This document shows positions 5,271-53,689 of a DNA stretch of 64,000 bases, piece after piece. A program made the position numbers and the translations under genes. The stretch's first letter is position 1; every line of letters begins with the position of its first letter. The DNA comes from Scyliorhinus canicula (Eukaryota): positions 222,125,623 through 222,189,622 of the forward strand of contig NC_052149.1 in the NCBI RefSeq assembly GCF_902713615.1, read 5' to 3'. The notes under the pieces were generated by a model, which was not told the origin of the DNA, did not search any database, and saw nothing but the letters and a program-made list of their open reading frames with translations.

Positions 5271-5499
5271 TACACTTTTCTTTGTTCTACTCCACACTGA
5301 GATTGTTCCCCAAATTAAGATGCACTCTGCATTTCTTTGGCAACCAGGCTTGGAAGATTGCACAGCAGCCTTGAGTTAGGAGAAATTCTGAGCGCAGCAG
5401 CAACCTATCTGTCATTACCTTGCTCCGAGGATTTGGGCCATTTATCATCGTTGACTGTACCTTGATATGAGGACAACGTCTGCCCAGAGTCACGAGCTT

Positions 5500-5975
5500 C
5501 TGCCAGAGGTCTTTGTGTGAGCGAGTAGACCTATTTTCCACCTGTTGACCTTTGAGTACATGGGGCAGGACCCCACAGGGTAATACAGGATTTGCTTCTT
5601 TTCCTTCTCTGCCATCACTCTGTCTCACCATTGGTGCATTGGGACCCAAAACAAGATGAAGATTGATGCCCAATTTGTTGCACTTTGCACAATTTGTGAG
5701 CAAGCTCTCCCACTTGTGGAGAGCTTCAGAGTGACTCTGAAGTGTTTTCTTTTGTCTTTCAGACATTTGAGTGTTGACAGAGGATCTGAACGGGGTGATG
5801 AATTTTGGCCCTGAGGACATAGTGGGCAGTCAATGGAACTCAATTTTGCAGGAGTTGTGCCTGAATGTTTGTGGAGCAGGCTTCAAGAAGGGCACAAGTA
5901 TTTGTTCGATGGTCCTTCTATTGAATCCGAAGGATGAGGCCGAGGCATTGCTGATGGAGATGGACCTTGGCCTGC
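5500..5975 (-). mobile_element. RTE/BovB-type LINE 3' remnant
   Basis: Frameshifted HQQCLGLILRIQ*KDHRTN...IQAQLLQ...KRKHFRVTLK...CPMYSKVNRWKIGLLAHTKT, resembling RTE C-termini. Confidence 0.6.
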
Positions 5976-8314: not shown

Positions 8315-8540
8315 ATAGAAACCCTACAGTGCACAAGGAGGCCATTCGGCCCATTGAGTCTGCACCCGCCCTCCAAAGGAGCACCCTATCTAAGCCCACT
8401 TCCCCGCTCTATCCCCGTAACCCAACCTAACCTGCACATCTTTGGACTGTGGGACTCCTGGAGAAACCCCACGCAGATACAGGGAGAAAGTGCAAACTCC
8501 ACACAGTCACCCAAGGCCGGACTTGAATCTGGGTCCCTGG
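8315..8540 (-). mobile_element. HE1-type V-SINE, CR1 tail
   Basis: V-domain and ATGGGCCGAATGGCCTCC tail. Confidence 0.85.
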
Positions 8541-9729
8541 TCCACAAGGAATTTGGAAAATTTTAATTCAACTGATCCCCAAAAGAAGGCCTGGATGTTT
8601 GCCATAGGTGTAAAGAGCGCAGAATTCCACAAGAATTGGTAACGGGAATTATGCCCGCAAGAGTCCCTGGAGTAATAGTCCCCACCGCCCCCACCAGTGA
8701 CAAAATGGTTTCCCGCCTTGAAAGGTCGGGAACCCCATTATCATATATTTAAATTTCGTTAGCAAGTATGCCCCCCCCCCCATGTTGTAAATGCTCCTCC
8801 CCCACCCGGCACGTGACGTCAAGTTGGCGCAGTTTAAACAGGTTTGTAAAAATGGGAACTGGCGAACAGAATCCCAACATGGGCACACAGGTGTGTACAG
8901 CAACCAGGGGAGAAGGTCATTCTCAGGCACTGCCCCTGGCATTGCCCGGACACTACCGTTATGGGGAGGGCAGGGGGTTGGGGGGAGGGGTTCCATGGGA
9001 TGGGGGGCTGGTTCCATCATTCTATGTTTATCTTCCTGACTCCAATCTGTCAAGAGCCAAGGTTACTGGCAGGACGGGCACATTGAGAGCTCACTCCGCC
9101 AGCATGTCTTTGGGGGACCCACCTCCTTGATTGTTTTGCCTAAATGTCAAAATATATGGTGGGGGAAAACTGGCAGTGCAGCGGATAGGCTACACCCCAC
9201 TTTCCCTGCCTGAGTTACACTTCGTCAAAAAATTGGAAAATTCCGCCTGTAAAATTAAAACGTTACTATCAGTAATGGTGACCATGTAATAAAAGCATAA
9301 AATGCTAGCAGTGAGGGGGATCATAATCGGGCATTACCCCCACGAACTTGATCAGTGCCCATGGCAAAGCTGTGGGCCCTCTGGCCGGCTCAGTTGTGGG
9401 GGTTCACCTTATCCATTGGCCATCAGGGACGGTTCCCCATGCCTGTGGGTGAGGCCTCAATGTCTGTGGGGGGGATTCCCGTGTCCGTGGGGGGGGCGGG
9501 TCTGTGAGACGGTGCCTTTTACTTCAATCAAAGATTGGGGTACCCTTTTTTAAAAAGTGCTCCCATCTCAAATTCCCTTTTGGCCCTGCCCATCCAGCTG
9601 GCTTTGTGAATATTGCTTCAGCTTTGAAACTTCACAGAGTGCTGTTCAGTACAGGGAGAAAAGCCAGCAGTGCAGCCTCCAAACTTCACGCCTGAGGCAG
9701 CACCCATTTCATTTTTGGGAAGATTCCGA

Positions 9730-48924: not shown

Positions 48925-49245
48925 TCAGGCCTTCGAGATTTCAGACCAGCCAGATCTATTCCTGGGGAGGAGGGCGGACGCCCTTGCCTTTGCCTCCCTG
49001 ATCGCCCGCCGTAGAATCCTGTTTGGCTGGCGGTCAGCAGCACCGCCCAGAGCTGCAGACTGGCTGTCCGACCTCTCGGAATCTCTCCAAATGGAGAAAA
49101 TCAAATTCGCCATCCGAGGGTCGGACGACGGCTTCCCAGAATGTGGGAGCCATTCATGCAATTGTTCCGGGACCTGTTTGTGGCCAACGAACAAGAGGAA
49201 GAATAGCCGGGTGGCCAAGAATCAGGGGAAAATGGACGGGAATCG
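48925..49245 (+). mobile_element. L1-type LINE ORF2 C-terminal fragment (5'-truncated, frameshifted)
   Basis: Translates to ...ASLIARRRILFGWRSAAPPRAADWLSDLSESLQMEKIKFAIRGSDDGF/WEPF..., typical of fish L1 ORF2 C-termini. Confidence 0.7.
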
Positions 49246-49247
49246 GG

Positions 49248-49396
49248 TACAGTAAGAAGCGTTACAACACCAGGTTAAAGTGCAACAGGTTTGTTTTTAA
49301 TCACTGGCTTTTGGAGCGCAGCGTACTCTTCTTATTCTTTAAAATAGACACTGTTGGACTTTAACCTGGTGTTATAACACTTCTTACTGTAGCCAC
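49248..49396. mobile_element. Older non-autonomous Penelope pLTR-derived inverted-repeat element (continues at 53213-53248)
   Basis: tacagtaagaagcgttacaacaccaggttaaagtgcaacag ... ctgttggactttaacctggtgttataacacttcttactgta: diverged inverted copies of the pLTR end. 53214-53248 is the reverse complement of about 52471-52503. Confidence 0.85.
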
Positions 49397-49522
49397 TGTT
49401 GCTCTTTAAAGTCGCCAGTATGATGTTATGTCCCAACAGCATCGCCAATACTGTCAACTACACCTTACAGCTACAATAATCTGTACTTAACTTCAGGGCG
49501 ACCGGCACTGTGCAAGTGGATA

Positions 49523-49684
49523 ACAGTAAGAAGTCTTACAACACCAGGTTAAAGTCCAACAGGTTTGTTTCAAACACGAGCTTTCGGAGCACGGCTCCTT
49601 CTTCAGGTGAATGGAAAGGCTTGTTCCAGAAATGTTTATATAGACACAGTCAGAGATGCCCCGGAATGCGAGCACCTGCAGGCA
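49523..49684 (-). repeat. 3' pseudo-LTR of the Penelope-like element
   Basis: acagtaagaagtcttac...gcacctgcaggca; identical by eye to 52507-52668. Confidence 0.95.
49575..49609 (-). ncRNA. Minimal type I hammerhead ribozyme (3' copy)
   Basis: Minus strand CAC-CUGAAGA-A-GGAGC-CGU-GCUCC-GAAA-GC-UC^GUG: CUGANGA and GAAA cores, 5-bp stem II, palindromic AGCU stem III, CAC/GUG stem I. Predicted cut between 49578 and 49577. Confidence 0.88.
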
Positions 49685-49754
49685 ATCAAATCATCAAAGA
49701 TGCAGAGAGAGAGGTAACTCCAGGTTAAAGAGGTGTGAATTGTCCCAAGCCAGT

Positions 49755-52508
49755 TCAGTCGGTAGGCATCTGCAAGTCCAGGCTTGTTGGTGGGGGCCGA
49801 ATGTAATGCGACATGAATCCCAGATCCCGGTTGAGTCCGCATTCATGCGTGCGGAACTTAGCTATAAGTTTTTGCTCAGCAATTTTGCGTTGTCGCGTCT
49901 CCTGAAGGCCTCCTTGTAGAATGCTGACCCGGAGATCAGAGGCTGAATGTCCTTGACTGCTGAAGTGTTCCCCAACTGGAAGGGAACAGTCCTGCCTGTT
50001 GATAGTCGCACGATGCCCGTTCATTCGTTGTCGCAGTGTCTGCATGGTCTCGCCAATGTACCACGCTTCGGGACATCCTTTCCTGCAGCGTATGAGGTAG
50101 ACTACATTGGTCGAGTCGCATGAGTATGCGCCGCGTACCTGGTGGGTGGTGTTTCCACGTGTAATGGTGGTGTCCATGTCGATGATCTGGCATGTCTTGC
50201 AGAGATTACCCTGGCAGGGTTTTGTGGTGTTGTGGTTGCTGTTCTGAAGGCTGGGTAATTTGCTGCAAACAATGGTTTGTTTGAGGTTGCGCGGTTGTTT
50301 GAAGGCCAGTAGTGGGGGTGTGGGGATGACCTTGGCAAGATGTCCATCCTCGCTGATGATGTGTTGGAGGCTGCGAAGAAGATGTCGTAGTTTCTCCGCC
50401 CCAGGAAAGTACTGGACGACGAAGGGTACTCTGTCAGTGGTGTCCCGTGTTTGTCTTCTGAGGAGGTCGGTGCGGTTTTTTGCTGTGGCGCGGTGGAACT
50501 GTCGATCAATGAGTCGAGCGCCATATCCCGTTCGTACGAGGGCATCTTTCAGCATCTGTAGGTGTCTGTTGCGCTCCTCCTTGTCTGAGCAGATCCTGTG
50601 TATACGGAGGGCTTGTCCATAGGGGATGGCTTCTTTAATGTGTTTCGGGTGAAAGCTGGAGAAGTGGAGCATCGTGAGATTATCTGTGGGCTTGCGGTAA
50701 AGCGAGGTGCTGAGGTGACCGTCCTTGATGGAGACGAGTGTGTCCAAGAATGGAACTGAATTTGGAGAATAGTCCATGGTGAGTTTGATGGTGGGATGGA
50801 ACTTATTGATGTCATCGTGTAGTCGTTTCAGTGATGTCTCGCCGTGGGTCCAAAGGAAAAAAATGTCATCGATGTATCTGGTGTATAGCATCGGTTGAAA
50901 GTCCTGTGTGGTGAGGAAGTCCTGTTCAAACTTGTGCATGAAGATGTTGGCATATTGAGGTGCAAATTTGGTCCCCATGGCTGTTCCGTGCGTCTGGATG
51001 AAGAATTTGTTGTCGAAGGTGAAGACGTTGTGGTCTAGAATGAAACGGATGAGTTGCAGAATTGCGTCTGGAGATTGGCAGTTGTCGGTGTTGAGGACTG
51101 AGGCTGTTGCAGCAATGCCGTCGTCATGGGGGATGCTGGTGTAGAGTGCCGAGACATCCATTGTGACGAGGAATGTTCCTGGTTCAACTGGTCCATGGGT
51201 GCTGAGTTTCTGTAGGAAGTCCGTCGTGTCGCGACAGAAGCTGGGTGTACCTTGTACGATGGGTTTCAAGATGCCCTCGATGTGGCCAGAGAGGTTCTTA
51301 CACAGGGTCCCATTGCCTGAAACGATAGGACGGCCTGGTGTGTTGGCCTTGTGTATTTTCGGGAGGCAGTAGAGATCTCCAATGCGGGGATTACGTGGGA
51401 TGAGAGCACGTAGGGTGTTCTGAAGATCTGGATCTAAGGTCTTGATCAGTCTGCTGAGTTGGCGGATGTGTTCCTTGGTTGGATCTGCGGGTAACTGCCT
51501 GTAGTGTTCCTGGTTGTCGAGTTGTCGGTATACTTCTTTGCAGTAGTCTGTTCTGTTCAGTATGATGGTGGCCCCTCCTTTGTCTGCTGGTTTGATGACG
51601 ATGTTGCGGTTGGTCTTGAGAGTGCGGATGGCGTTGCGTTGTGCTTGGGTGACGTTTGAGGCTGCCTTGTGATTGCGAGTGATGAATCTGGCATTGACAC
51701 GACTTCTGACGGCTTGAGCATACATGTCGAGTCTAGGGCAGCGGCCTTCCGGAGGGGTCCAATTTGACTCTTTCCTTTTCGGTTGCTGCACTGCAGATCT
51801 CGCGGTCTGCTGTTCCGGTTCATTGGTCGTGTCCCTGGGTTCGCTGTCGGCCTCTTGGGGTCTGTGGAAGAATTCCCGGAGCCTCATTCGCCTGATGAAT
51901 TCCTCCGTATCTGCCGCGAGACTGATGGGGTCCATTTTGGTGGTGGTGCAGAAATTGAGCCCTCTGCTGAGGACTTCGATTTCGTCTGGTTGAAGGGTGT
52001 AGTCTGACAAGTTGACAATGGATTTCCCTGTATTGTTTTCGACTGTTGTACCGGGAGAAGCTTGATTGCTGCTGGTGGTGATGCCAAGTTTCTCAAGCTT
52101 CCTGTTCTTGGTGTGCATGTAGGTGGCATAGTATTGCTGTCTCATCTGTTTGGCGGTGTTCCGCAGCTGGTCTGCTGTGTCCTGAGCGCAAGTTGAGAAT
52201 ATGGCCTCTCTCTTGGTTTCCAGGTTGCGTCGACTGCTGTAGAGTTGGTGTACGAGGTGTTTGAGGAGTGTGACAGAGGTGCGGTGGCAGAGTCTTTCAG
52301 CGTAGTCTGTGTTGTAAGTCGACTTGAGTGGGTTTTTGATCTGTAGTCCTTTCGGGATCTTGTCTGCTTTTTTGCATCTTTGTAGAAACTGAATGTCAGT
52401 GTCTATATGCGCGATCTTCCTGGAGATCCTCTCCACTTTGAGCCGGCAGTTTGCGGTGTCAATGGTAGCCATGATGTGGAGATGCCGGCGTTGGACTGGG
52501 GTGAGCAC
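49755..52508 (-). CDS. Penelope-like element (Neptune-type) reverse transcriptase + GIY-YIG endonuclease, intact ORF; likely ATG at 52472 (905 aa)
   Basis: Uninterrupted 917-codon ORF. RT motifs LPKIHK..PGRPIVS, LVTMDVSALYTSIP, QTHGTAMGTKFAPQYANIFM, YTRYIDDIF, PFLD. Cys-rich linker CQGNLCKTC, then GIY-YIG VVYLIRC...WYIGET...RMNGH. ATG lies in a strong Kozak context (atcATGG). Confidence 0.96.
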   Translation of the reverse strand: MLTPVQRRHLHIMATIDTANCRLKVERISRKIAHIDTDIQFLQRCKKADKIPKGLQIKNPLKSTYNTDYAERLCHRTSVTLLKHLVHQLYSSRRNLETKREAIFSTCAQDTADQLRNTAKQMRQQYYATYMHTKNRKLEKLGITTSSNQASPGTTVENNTGKSIVNLSDYTLQPDEIEVLSRGLNFCTTTKMDPISLAADTEEFIRRMRLREFFHRPQEADSEPRDTTNEPEQQTARSAVQQPKRKESNWTPPEGRCPRLDMYAQAVRSRVNARFITRNHKAASNVTQAQRNAIRTLKTNRNIVIKPADKGGATIILNRTDYCKEVYRQLDNQEHYRQLPADPTKEHIRQLSRLIKTLDPDLQNTLRALIPRNPRIGDLYCLPKIHKANTPGRPIVSGNGTLCKNLSGHIEGILKPIVQGTPSFCRDTTDFLQKLSTHGPVEPGTFLVTMDVSALYTSIPHDDGIAATASVLNTDNCQSPDAILQLIRFILDHNVFTFDNKFFIQTHGTAMGTKFAPQYANIFMHKFEQDFLTTQDFQPMLYTRYIDDIFFLWTHGETSLKRLHDDINKFHPTIKLTMDYSPNSVPFLDTLVSIKDGHLSTSLYRKPTDNLTMLHFSSFHPKHIKEAIPYGQALRIHRICSDKEERNRHLQMLKDALVRTGYGARLIDRQFHRATAKNRTDLLRRQTRDTTDRVPFVVQYFPGAEKLRHLLRSLQHIISEDGHLAKVIPTPPLLAFKQPRNLKQTIVCSKLPSLQNSNHNTTKPCQGNLCKTCQIIDMDTTITRGNTTHQVRGAYSCDSTNVVYLIRCRKGCPEAWYIGETMQTLRQRMNGHRATINRQDCSLPVGEHFSSQGHSASDLRVSILQGGLQETRQRKIAEQKLIAKFRTHECGLNRDLGFMSHYIRPPPTSLDLQMPTD

Positions 52509-52668
52509 AGTAAGAAGTCTTACAACACCAGGTTAAAGTCCAACAGGTTTGTTTCAAACACGAGCTTTCGGAGCACGGCTCCTTCTTCAGGTGAATGGAA
52601 AGGCTTGTTCCAGAAATGTTTATATAGACACAGTCAGAGATGCCCCGGAATGCGAGCACCTGCAGGCA
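52507..52668 (-). repeat. 5' pseudo-LTR of the Penelope-like element
   Basis: Identical by eye to 49523-49684. Confidence 0.95.
52559..52593 (-). ncRNA. Minimal type I hammerhead ribozyme (5' copy)
   Basis: Identical to the 49575-49609 motif. Predicted cut between 52562 and 52561, about 90 nt upstream of the ATG. Confidence 0.88.
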
Positions 52669-53689
52669 TTATCTTGATCTCACATGGCTGGTTTGAAGAA
52701 GTGGCTCTGAATCTGCTGGGCTCATCCGTCTGGTAGCGATCGTTGGTCTTGAACTTGGCTGGCTGTTCCTGCTACATTTGGCTGGCACGGGCCGAATTCA
52801 AAGGAGGCTAAACACATGGCTGTGTCTCTTTTTATCCCTCTAAGGTTTCGCGCTTTTTGGGGCAGTCCTTAATCTTGGACCCAATAATTCGCCAGGATTC
52901 GATTACTGTCTTCAAGTTCGGCCAATAAAGGGGCGGGTGCTTCGTGGCTGGGCGGGTCCTGAGCGGTCAGTGACCTTGGCAGTTGGGCTCTCTGAGTAAA
53001 GGGAGTGGCACCGATCAGTCTGTGGCTATACCGGTTTCTTGATTGGAGTCCTATTGTTCTGGGGAACGGGCCATTAAAATGCAAACGAGCGGGGGTTTCG
53101 ATCAGGTCTAGCTACCTGTGTTTCAGATACACATAGGCTCTGCATCTGTCTGAGTCCTGGGTTGGCCATAATTCCCATGGTCCTTTTCAGGTGGCCATCT
53201 CAGATGGCTACACCACCCCAGTCCAACACCCCCGCATCTCCACATCATTTTAAAGAGCAGTGTGGTTTGACCTTTAGAATCAAATAAACATCGAATTTCA
53301 TAGAATTGTCATGTCACTGAAAAGTAATGATTGAATTAGATTAGACAACCTTCCTCATATACTTAGAATTTTCAAAGTGATGTTGCAATACTGTATAAAT
53401 AGATTGATAGTTAGTGAAGCCACTTACTGTACAATTGAGTGACGTTAATTACCACAACTATTACAGTATATTATCTGTTAAAACTGTTTTTAAATAAATA
53501 TCTACTATTTTTAGATACTACCAAAGTAATATCTGTGGAAAAAAAATCCCAAAATTGGAAGAATAGGCTAAACTACAATAAAAACAGAAAATGCTGGATC
53601 AATTCAGCAGATCTGGCAGCATCCATGGAGAGAGAAACAGAGTCCACCGACAATATGGAAAATTGCCCGAGTCAGGATTGTCTTTAAAA

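Follow-up and report, generated by a model that had tools for sequence, protein, structure and literature searches.

Endonuclease-bearing (EN+) Penelope-like elements (PLEs) in their canonical form carry a single ORF for a reverse transcriptase (RT) with a C-terminal GIY-YIG domain, and direct pseudo-LTRs (pLTRs) derived from a partial tandem (PMC4209133, PMC8557442). Their minimal type I hammerhead has a bulged base before helix II, G10.1-C11.1, a palindromic 15.2-16.2 and no loop III; a 30-40-nt tail is optional, and 5'-truncated and inverted relics are found nearby. The partial-tandem geometry is the standard of PLEs, including clades lacking a hammerhead (Craig et al. 2021, PMC8557442). 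How these elements are copied, and the constant presence of partial tandem repeats and hammerheads, have been under debate since 2014, when PLE RNA circles, cut by the ribozyme and ligated, were proposed as templates for more-than-unit reverse transcription (Cervera & de la Pena, PMC4209133). The Poseidon element PAc of Anolis carolinensis (Frangieh et al. 2024, PMC11167929) has been reconstituted in vitro: its 3' ends lie at two adjacent internal stem-loop sites downstream of the hammerhead cut, its 'tail' is the stretch between these two end points, and its target site is AT-rich. Metazoan non-LTR retrozymes (Cervera & de la Pena 2020, PMC7229834; Li et al. 2026 preprint 10.64898/2026.07.22.740005) possess type I hammerheads one unit apart; ligation of their 5'-OH/cyclic-phosphate monomers to circles has been demonstrated, and they have been proposed to be derived from PLEs and mobilised by them.

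The window analysed, a stretch of 64,000 nucleotides of the Scyliorhinus canicula genome (NC_052149.1), holds one full copy of an element with the following layout:

49523..52668, minus strand: whole PLE copy, pLTR-ORF-pLTR, 3146 bp, the sole full copy of its family in the window
52507..52668, minus strand: 5' pLTR, 162 nt, 100% identity with 49523-49684
49523..49684, minus strand: 3' pLTR, 162 nt, 49523 being the 3' end of the element (RT start point no. 1)
49755..52472, minus strand: intact ORF of 905 aa plus stop (translation; ATG at 52472, TGA at 49757-49755)
49578..52561, minus strand: unit between both predicted hammerhead cuts, 2984 nt (by arithmetic on repeat and motif positions), the circle proposed in the initial annotation
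52619..52626, minus strand: TATA-like box TATATAAA in the 5' pLTR, with a second copy at 49635-49642

The initial annotation had described a perfect 162-nt repeat, a 2984-nt unit containing the whole ORF between two ribozymes and a 55-nt extension past the 3' cut, and all of these were recovered. A repeat search of the window returned two copies of the direct repeat (49523-49684 and 52507-52668), 100% identical and 2984 nt apart from start to start; the predicted cuts at 52562|52561 and 49578|49577 enclose the ORF, and the copy runs 55 nt past the second of these, ending at 49523. Beyond this position the flank is unrelated to the element and begins TATCCACTTGC. The unit (52561..49578) is composed of an 89-nt leader, the 2718-nt ORF including its stop codon and a 177-nt 3' UTR up to the cut. 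An RT ORF, a C-terminal GIY-YIG domain, partial-tandem pLTRs, a hammerhead motif in the pLTR and a tail were all found, as in EN+ PLEs. The pLTR-ORF-pLTR layout is the standard of the class and nothing structural departs from canonical EN+ PLEs: the element is a very young, intact, canonical endonuclease-bearing PLE in the partial-tandem form typical of its class. This copy shows five private differences over 2822 nt (among them A at 49768, T at 51566 and A at 51426), which could mark RNA from this locus. Given this number, zero mismatches between the pLTRs would be expected with a frequency of 56% even with divergence since insertion; their perfect identity is therefore uninformative taken alone and was dropped as evidence.

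The ORF encodes an RT (RVT_1, E=8.6e-11), with DKG and YIDD motifs in its translation. Its C-terminal GIY-YIG match (E=8.5e-4) scores 20 bits, slightly under the 22.6-bit Pfam cut-off; the endonuclease motif VVYLIRC...WYIGET...R..H is present in the translation, and PF01541 is carried by many of the ORF's homologues. These number 3919 at E<=1e-30, the best one carrying PF00078, DUF8422 and HTH_animal. Its closest protein matches, with 84-91% identity, are unnamed shark PLE ORFs (Scyliorhinus, Heptranchias). An exact-protein look-up gave no record and a sequence search against the PDB gave no match.

Two identical hammerhead motifs were identified, one in each pLTR:

52554..52598, minus strand: 5' minimal type I hammerhead, predicted cut between 52562 and 52561
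49570..49614, minus strand: 3' minimal hammerhead, identical to the 5' one, predicted cut between 49578 and 49577

Helix I consists of CAC/GUG and two further pairs, and the core CUGAAGA is followed by a bulged A; helix II (GGAGC-CGU-GCUCC) then leads to GAAA, the palindrome AGCU and C17, with the predicted scissile bonds directly 3' of C17. The 32-nt motif CTGAAGAAGGAGCCGTGCTCCGAAAGCTCGTG has exactly two minus-strand matches in the window (49606-49575 and 52590-52559; chance expectation 0.00). No hammerhead model of Rfam matched, either in the whole window at the gathering threshold or in 49000-53200 at E<=10, so the call leans on the published minimal-hammerhead descriptor and on a comparison of six PLE lineages. 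The architecture is common to these six lineages and helices I and II covary among them through compensatory changes; at the level of sequence the hammerhead is confirmed by this covariation, and self-cleavage is predicted. The sole Rfam match returned, MIR844 (E=0.0038), was rejected as a false positive, corresponding to a relic hairpin at 49245-49394. In the reads, common variants of the shark hammerhead are confined to the free positions N7, loop II and H17 (52586, 52577 and 52562), which suggests selection for an active ribozyme. Through the dimer-type AGCU helix III, the two hammerheads of a single transcript, 5' and 3', would pair with each other and keep the ligatable ends together. In the shark element the cut lies 89 nt upstream of the ATG, whereas in canonical EN+ PLEs the hammerhead overlaps the start codon.

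Downstream of the cut, the leader holds a conserved stem and the two points at which copies of the family end:

52490..52544, minus strand: conserved leader stem (by folding), GUUGGACU (52544-52537) pairing with AGUCCAAC (52497-52490)
52471..52506, minus strand: 'tail' of 36 nt, bounded by the two 3' end points of the family (52507, and ~52471 at the ATG; from reads, contigs and L003)

Within the stem lie a hairpin (GUAAG-ACUU-CUUAC) and, at 52507, RT start point no. 1; L001 and L003 retain the stem, with a single compensatory change from C-G to U-A. The match to the window is lost at 52470-52473 in 569 X32 reads and at 52508 in contigs, and the 3' pLTR of L003 likewise ends at its own ATG. 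Copies of the family end at one of two 3' points separated by 36 nt, the known optional 'tail', and both points lie in the conserved, structured leader. It has been described that the 30-40-bp tail of PLEs sits between two RT start sites (PMC11167929). A start of reverse transcription in the leader, as put forward in the initial annotation, is in keeping with these data: the 3' end of the copy is internal to the leader, in agreement with the family-wide 3' ends in reads and with internal initiation by the Anolis PLE in vitro (PMC11167929). The positions differ between the two elements, the start sites of PAc being 111-118 nt inside the ORF with the cut 26 nt after the ATG, whereas the shark end points are 55 and ~91 nt after the cut, preceding or touching the ATG. 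Furthermore, PAc occurs in long tandem arrays while the shark copy is one unit plus 162 nt, and PAc is known from reconstitution, the shark element here from sequence alone.

From the TATA-like box, transcription is predicted to begin near 52596, ~35 nt on the 5' side of the cut, and TATA-like strings occur at the matching alignment position in L001 and L003. The 5' pLTR reaches 71 nt beyond this predicted start, so the template would have been longer than a single-unit transcript from the pLTR promoter. The initial annotation proposed a circular RNA. In this model a transcript would be cut at 52562|52561 and 49578|49577, and the RT would proceed from 52507 once round the ligated unit and a further 162 nt. 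This idea is already published (Cervera & de la Pena 2014, PMC4209133, Discussion), and we regard it as a real but doubtful possibility for this locus. It accounts for the exact geometry of repeats and cuts. Once both cuts are made, the complete ribozyme core would sit at the 3' end of the unit and the helix I partner at its 5' end, which allows the ends to re-pair, and the palindromic AGCU helix III implies two hammerheads acting together (PMC4209133). In the 3' pLTR of this copy the conserved leader stem is without its 3' half; should initiation depend on this stem, it could take place only at the 5' leader, which a circle would join to the ORF. The conservation of the hammerhead with covariation also favours a circle, as do the animal retrozyme relatives, which form circles (PMC7229834). 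These relatives resemble the shark unit in having two hammerheads that bracket one unit, but at 170-400 nt (class criterion 170-1000 nt) they encode no protein, are non-autonomous, carry canonical hammerheads and form circles in abundance, whereas the shark unit, at 2984 nt with an intact 905-aa RT/endonuclease ORF and a minimal hammerhead, falls outside the small, non-coding, non-autonomous class.

Against a circle, the PLE literature examined holds no report of a full-length PLE circle, and in vitro cleavage by minimal PLE hammerheads is poor (PMC4209133). Hammerheads are missing from Naiad and from most Chlamys PLEs, in which pLTRs, partial tandems and tails form nonetheless (PMC8557442). 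In Anolis PAc the C3G/G8C ribozyme mutants, used as ribozyme-dead templates in vitro, left insertion unchanged, and RNA-seq ends were absent at the cut (PMC11167929). Since hammerhead-less clades and ribozyme-dead templates give the same pLTR geometry, the template was most likely linear, with a covalent circle unneeded. The concession in the initial annotation that uncleaved tandem read-through would give the same structure was well placed, the geometry being equally that of linear more-than-unit templates. A stronger reading appears unlikely, namely that rolling reverse transcription depends on the excised and ligated 2984-nt coding RNA as its obligatory template and that this circle may double as a cap-less mRNA; it would explain how single-unit copies with a half-stem 3' pLTR found full-length copies with identical pLTRs. 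On the linear reading, the probable role of the hammerheads is in RNA processing or regulation (5' trimming or unit release, for instance) and not in creating the repeat. The confinement of hammerhead variants to free positions, the AGCU helix III and the retrozyme circles (PMC7229834) were counted against a linear template.

The initial annotation had called for a genome-wide check of whether 3' ends are fixed while the 5' repeat varies in length and the repeats within each copy are identical. This pattern was found in a related five-copy family: the 3' end is common to the copies, the 5' repeat length varies from 102 to 3918 nt, and within-copy mismatches amount to 0/201, 0/162, 0/1588 and 2/3918, both of the latter in a satellite stretch. 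The copies differ from each other by 0.2-4.8%, and the within-copy repeats are identical even in the lineage that has diverged by 4.8%, which argues against pLTRs inherited over long periods from old tandem donors. Identical repeats within copies that differ from each other point instead to every insertion having made its repeats anew from a single sequence. Over seven young copies of three lineages, within-copy repeats are likewise identical while the 5' repeat length varies, which is in favour of a circle; however, every genomic prediction of a circle is common to strand transfer. Tandem donors do exist among relatives (L005 with 1.97 units, L010 with at least 3.6 units). Read-through needs donors longer than their daughters and so predicts shrinking repeats and inherited mismatches. 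Three origins agree equally well with the pattern of the five-copy family: a circle, a linear RNA with redundant ends that undergoes strand transfer, and a tandem donor that is very young. Within-copy repeat identity, explained by a circle as well as by strand transfer, was counted against the linear reading.

Strand transfer of this kind has a parallel in the strong-stop transfer of retroviruses and LTR retrotransposons (R region), as a pLTR-ORF-pLTR RNA is terminally redundant too: a cDNA started close to the 5' end could move to the matching 3' repeat and yield identical repeats in every cycle. PLEs differ from those systems in priming from a nicked target and in lacking a tRNA primer, PBS, PPT and integrase. 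We know of no demonstration of strand transfer for PLEs; that it may operate in them is our own proposal, with no published source to cite.

Taken as a whole, the locus is probably best explained as a young canonical partial-tandem PLE which was copied, from an internal start, off a more-than-unit and likely linear template. The endonuclease would nick the AT-rich site GGATA^TTATC, and reverse transcription would be primed at the nick, with its start inside the leader, 55 nt beyond the hammerhead cut on the 3' side. The RT would copy one full unit and 162 nt of a more-than-unit template before stopping at an arbitrary point, and insertion would take place without target duplication. Such a template may have come from read-through transcription over several units of a tandem donor that was young and homogeneous; or it may have been one terminally redundant RNA on which the cDNA, on reaching the 5' end, was transferred to the matching 3' pLTR and copying went on reiteratively.

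Proof that a 3-kb coding circle serves as template would settle the question raised in 2014 and link autonomous retrotransposons to viroid-like RNA circles. The locus adds no new idea to it and is a good test object, being a single unit, intact and young. What is added here is a hammerhead missed by Rfam, the two 3' end points and the repeat pattern of the five-copy family. This small comparative result (identical repeats at 4.8% divergence, a fixed 3' end and a variable 5' end) may serve specialists; it gives no decision between circle and strand transfer.

Read data comprised one raw RNA run (poly(A) single-cell RNA-seq, reads <=151 nt), two RNA contig sets and one DNA contig set. Near-identical sequence is present in RNA-labelled public runs, not necessarily as a transcript of this locus. 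In the raw run, read ends did not accumulate at either cut (52561/52562 and 49577/49578), which speaks against a circle as weak evidence, the library being poly(A) single-cell and cleaved RNAs having no poly(A). A go-back joint was not observed either. The reads are shorter than the 162-nt repeat, and the Logan contigs (k=31) either stop there or fuse its two contexts irrespective of the molecules present, so that a circle or tandem junction cannot show in these data; contig connectivity was accordingly rejected as evidence for either. Two unit-sized metagenome contigs (L001 and L002), searched for the terminal overlap of a circular assembly, had none.

No target-site duplication of 4 nt or more was found at the two junctions. 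A paralogous empty-site read bridges 49523 to 52685, with 6 nt (AGACCT) seemingly missing at the filled site, as judged from a paralogue and not an allele. That the 162-nt repeat is an artefact of mis-joined tandem or permuted reads is extremely improbable: tandem and inverted arrangements of PLEs are a known source of assembly problems (PMC8557442), but here both flanks are unique, non-element sequence, the paralogous read bridges the site, and the same architecture was found in independent long-read assemblies of relatives. An origin in two events, either an earlier 162-nt 5'-truncated copy later joined by a full-length copy or unequal DNA recombination, is very improbable. The pLTR region is among the sites that a PLE's own endonuclease can target (PMC11167929), and short terminal fragments are ~40x commoner than the ORF body in the DNA contigs (X1 depth 672 versus 16.5); yet the junction 52506/52507 is seamless and in register, the repeats are identical, and the structure recurs in independent copies and lineages.

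Older fragments of the same family flank the element on both sides:

49249..49390, no single strand: older relic of two head-to-head terminal fragments (window repeat comparison)
53214..53248, plus strand: detached 'tail' of the plus-strand relic, matching 52503-52471 with 89% identity

The minus-strand part of the relic runs from 49249 to ~49338 and contains a decayed hammerhead, and its plus-strand part occupies 49338-49390.

One full retroelement copy lies in the window: an ordinary, though unusually clean, Penelope-like element (PLE) that carries pseudo-LTRs (pLTRs). It and the associated features are as follows, with L001 and L003 being two of ten sequences (L001-L010) that carry related PLEs.

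Features of the element and its surroundings
49523-52668, minus strand: the full retroelement copy
52626-52619, minus strand: TATA-like box (TATATAAA), aligning with TATA-like strings of L001 and L003
52544-52537 paired with 52497-52490, minus strand: leader stem (GUUGGACU with AGUCCAAC) obtained by folding, enclosing position 52507
49768, 50121, 51299, 51426 and 51566: positions private to this copy (three amino-acid changes, two silent)
49245-49394: hairpin with 56-nt arms, 84% complementary, formed by two terminal fragments of this PLE family that lie head to head

A repeat search of the window identified a 162-nt direct repeat (49523-49684 and 52507-52668; 100% identity, spacing 2984 nt), between whose copies an open frame runs uninterrupted from the first ATG at 52472 to a TGA at 49757-49755 (905 aa). 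The ORF possesses an RVT_1 domain (Pfam, E=8.6e-11), DKG and YIDD motifs are seen in its translation, and its C-terminal block (VVYLIRC...WYIGET...R..H) resembles GIY-YIG with E=8.5e-4, slightly below the Pfam cut-off. Its closest database proteins are unnamed shark ORFs (Scyliorhinus torazame, 91%; Heptranchias perlo, 84%; Mustelus asterias, 83%), followed in the protein search by thousands of Penelope-type RT proteins of other animals. Public reads and contigs were mapped on 49200-53000; against all of these, the copy has five private differences in 2822 nt, which are possible locus-specific markers and include M902 (R in the others), K392 (E) and I303 (V).

The initial annotation had placed the whole ORF within a 2984-nt unit released by two ribozymes, and this geometry was confirmed in every number by the repeat search, the motif and arithmetic. 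Cuts are predicted between 52562 and 52561 and between 49578 and 49577, and the unit between them consists of an 89-nt leader, a 2718-nt ORF with stop and a 177-nt 3′ UTR. The copy does extend 55 nt beyond the predicted 3′ cut, and its 162-nt repeat is perfect. No Rfam hammerhead model matched either the whole window (gathering threshold) or 49000-53200 (E<=10). By the definition of Cervera & de la Pena (PMC4209133), the putative ribozyme is a textbook "minimal" PLE hammerhead (minus strand, slash at the cut: CAC-CUGAAGA-A-GGAGC-CGU-GCUCC-GAAA-GC-UC/GUG). It has type I topology, with one base bulged out between positions 9 and 10.1, pairing of G10.1 with C11.1, the palindrome A15.1-G-C-U16.1 in place of loop III, and C17 at the cut. 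The window has just two occurrences of its 32-nt core (0.00 expected). The same architecture was found in all five further PLE lineages obtained via protein matches (L001-L005), where helix II is GAGCU/AGCUC, GGGGC/GCUCC, GAGGUU/AACCUC, GGCU/GGCC or GCCCUUUG/UAAAGGGC against GGAGC/GCUCC here. Helix I covaries too, the known U3/A8 core covariation is present in L002, and the palindrome is always AGCU or ACGU. Within the motif, common variants in the shark reads and contigs, which represent many family copies, fall only at N7, loop II and H17 (52586, 52577 and 52562; for the 3′ motif also 49602 and 49593), H17 changing from C to A and loop II at its first base; position 17 is A in every mapped contig of the DNA set X1. 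Such placement is the pattern expected if the ribozyme were kept functional.

Sequence from the final ~100 nt of the element is much commoner than the ORF body (depth 672 vs 16.5 in the X1 contigs), so that short 5′-truncated copies dominate. Match to the window is lost at 52470-52473, into heterogeneous sequence, in 569 reads of the mapped set X32, and at 52508 in a few contigs, which gives this family two 3′ end points separated by 36 nt. The present copy ends at the upstream one (52507, equivalent to 49523). Most short copies end at the other, at the ATG (~52471), as does the 3′ pLTR of L003 (59% identical) at its own ATG, and a relic at 53214-53248 is a tail of the ATG type. Anolis PAc has a pair of neighbouring internal RT start sites and a 30-40-bp "tail", demonstrated in vitro (PMC11167929), which these end points match. 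The 3′ end of the element is probably an internal initiation site. L001 and L003 retain the leader stem, with a single compensatory change, but not the sequence inside it; the 3′ half of the stem is absent from the 3′ pLTR of this copy. The TATA-like box predicts a transcription start at ~52596, about 35 nt 5′ of the cut. As the 5′ pLTR reaches 71 nt further upstream, TATA-like box included, a single-unit transcript started at the pLTR promoter would have been too short to be the template.

Zero mismatches in a 162-nt pLTR pair are expected 56% of the time with five private differences in 2822 nt, so the identity of the shark pair alone weighs little. A related family offered five copies in one long-read assembly (L005-L009; protein 43% identical to the shark ORF). 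Here the fixed 3′ ends, variable 5′ extents and identical within-copy repeats that the initial annotation had named as a test were borne out: all five have their 3′ ends at one shared element position in (TA)n, 68 nt beyond the cut, and 5′ repeats of 102, 162, 201, 1588 and 3918 nt. Mismatches within copies number 0/162, 0/201, 0/1588 and 2/3918 (both in a satellite stretch), and a single indel, in an A-run, separates the two copies of the 102-nt repeat. Copies differ from one another by 0.2-0.5%, and L009 from the rest by 4.8%; the repeats were thus born identical even in this long-diverged lineage, and their unchanged inheritance from old tandem donors is excluded for this family. L004, of another lineage, has a direct repeat of 190 nt and an inverted one of 474 nt, each 100% identical, and L003 (ORF broken) has 95.4% repeat identity. 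L010 contains at least 3.6 units in tandem, 99.55-99.9% alike.

This pattern does not single out a circle, as two linear routes give the same one. On a linear RNA with terminal redundancy, RT might begin in the 5′ leader, run to the 5′ end of the RNA and transfer, once or repeatedly, onto the matching 3′ pLTR, a route modelled on retroviral strong-stop transfer; or the donor might be a very young, homogeneous tandem that is read through. A linear template of either kind is considered the probable explanation. The covalent circular RNA template proposed by the initial annotation is a known hypothesis, published to explain the head-to-tail arrangement of PLEs (PMC4209133), and is still unproven; it appears unlikely here. 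Later work has not confirmed it (PMC11167929, PMC8557442, PMC7229834). PAc templates with a dead ribozyme inserted normally, the main substrate was unprocessed RNA, and no RNA-seq ends lay at the cut; the authors' model is a multi-copy mRNA (PMC11167929). Hammerheads are missing from Naiad and from most Chlamys PLEs, which nevertheless form pLTRs, partial tandems and tails (PMC8557442). Circles have been demonstrated only for small non-coding retrozymes (PMC7229834), which a 2026 preprint derives from PLE pLTRs (10.64898/2026.07.22.740005). The remaining probability belongs to two-step or artefactual origins and mechanisms not considered here.

Contigs from many runs labelled as RNA, all of one species, contain near-identical copies, as do DNA runs under three species labels. 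The sole raw-read run, poly(A) single-cell RNA-seq, shows similar sense and antisense depth, 3′ bias on the sense strand and low flank coverage. It contained neither read-end pile-up at the cuts, cleaved RNAs being without poly(A), nor go-back joints. Its reads (<=151 nt) are too short to span the 162-nt repeat and k=31 contigs cannot resolve it; with poly(A) selection added, the missing circle signal is no evidence against a circle. In the same run, ORF-antisense reads peak at 50470-50850 (depth 75-159 vs 11-21 sense) with several shared variants; a further copy lying antisense within a host transcript is their probable source.

Several further features of the related PLEs were observed. The 3′ junctions of L005-L009 all lie in (TA)n microsatellites (...CTATTTA/TATATATATA...), which fits the microsatellite/AT-rich target bias reported for PLEs. 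L005 carries ~900 nt of satellite-like internal repeats between ORF and pLTR (8499-9450 and 12538-13450), called as a spurious 303-aa ORF and only 27 nt long in the other four copies. In L008, an inverted pLTR (5421-5631) adjoins the 5′ pLTR and differs from the 3′ pLTR by four mismatches and two gap columns in 213 nt, unlike the identical direct pair; the inverted copy of L004 is 100% identical over 474 nt. L010 (1-11354; ENA ERZ21788738, ctg53201c) is an 11.35-kb contig of tandem PLE units only, with a period of ~3123 nt. Either a loop in the assembly of a tandem array or extrachromosomal circular DNA may account for it; the suffix c is given to circular contigs by some long-read assemblers.

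No target duplication was found at the junctions of the shark copy. The site is bridged in four reads (GGATAA-GACCT-TTATCTTGATC), which come from a paralogue of the host repeat and suggest an AT-rich target with perhaps a 6-bp loss. The host sequence itself lies inside an older relic (49249-49390 and 53214-53248) that belongs to the same family and is arranged head to head. One arm of its hairpin keeps a decayed hammerhead (GCTCCAAAAGCCAGTG), and an Rfam MIR844 match there (28.8 bits, E=0.0038) is spurious, made by the hairpin. The plus-strand relic is split between its terminal 53 nt (49338-49390) and the 35-nt tail by ~680 bp of another repeat and the young PLE, and the insertion is therefore nested. 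The other repeat opens with CCACTGTTGCTCTTTAAAG (49394-49412), which is nearly the reverse complement of TTTAAAGAGCAGTGTGG (53249-53265), the sequence directly following the tail.
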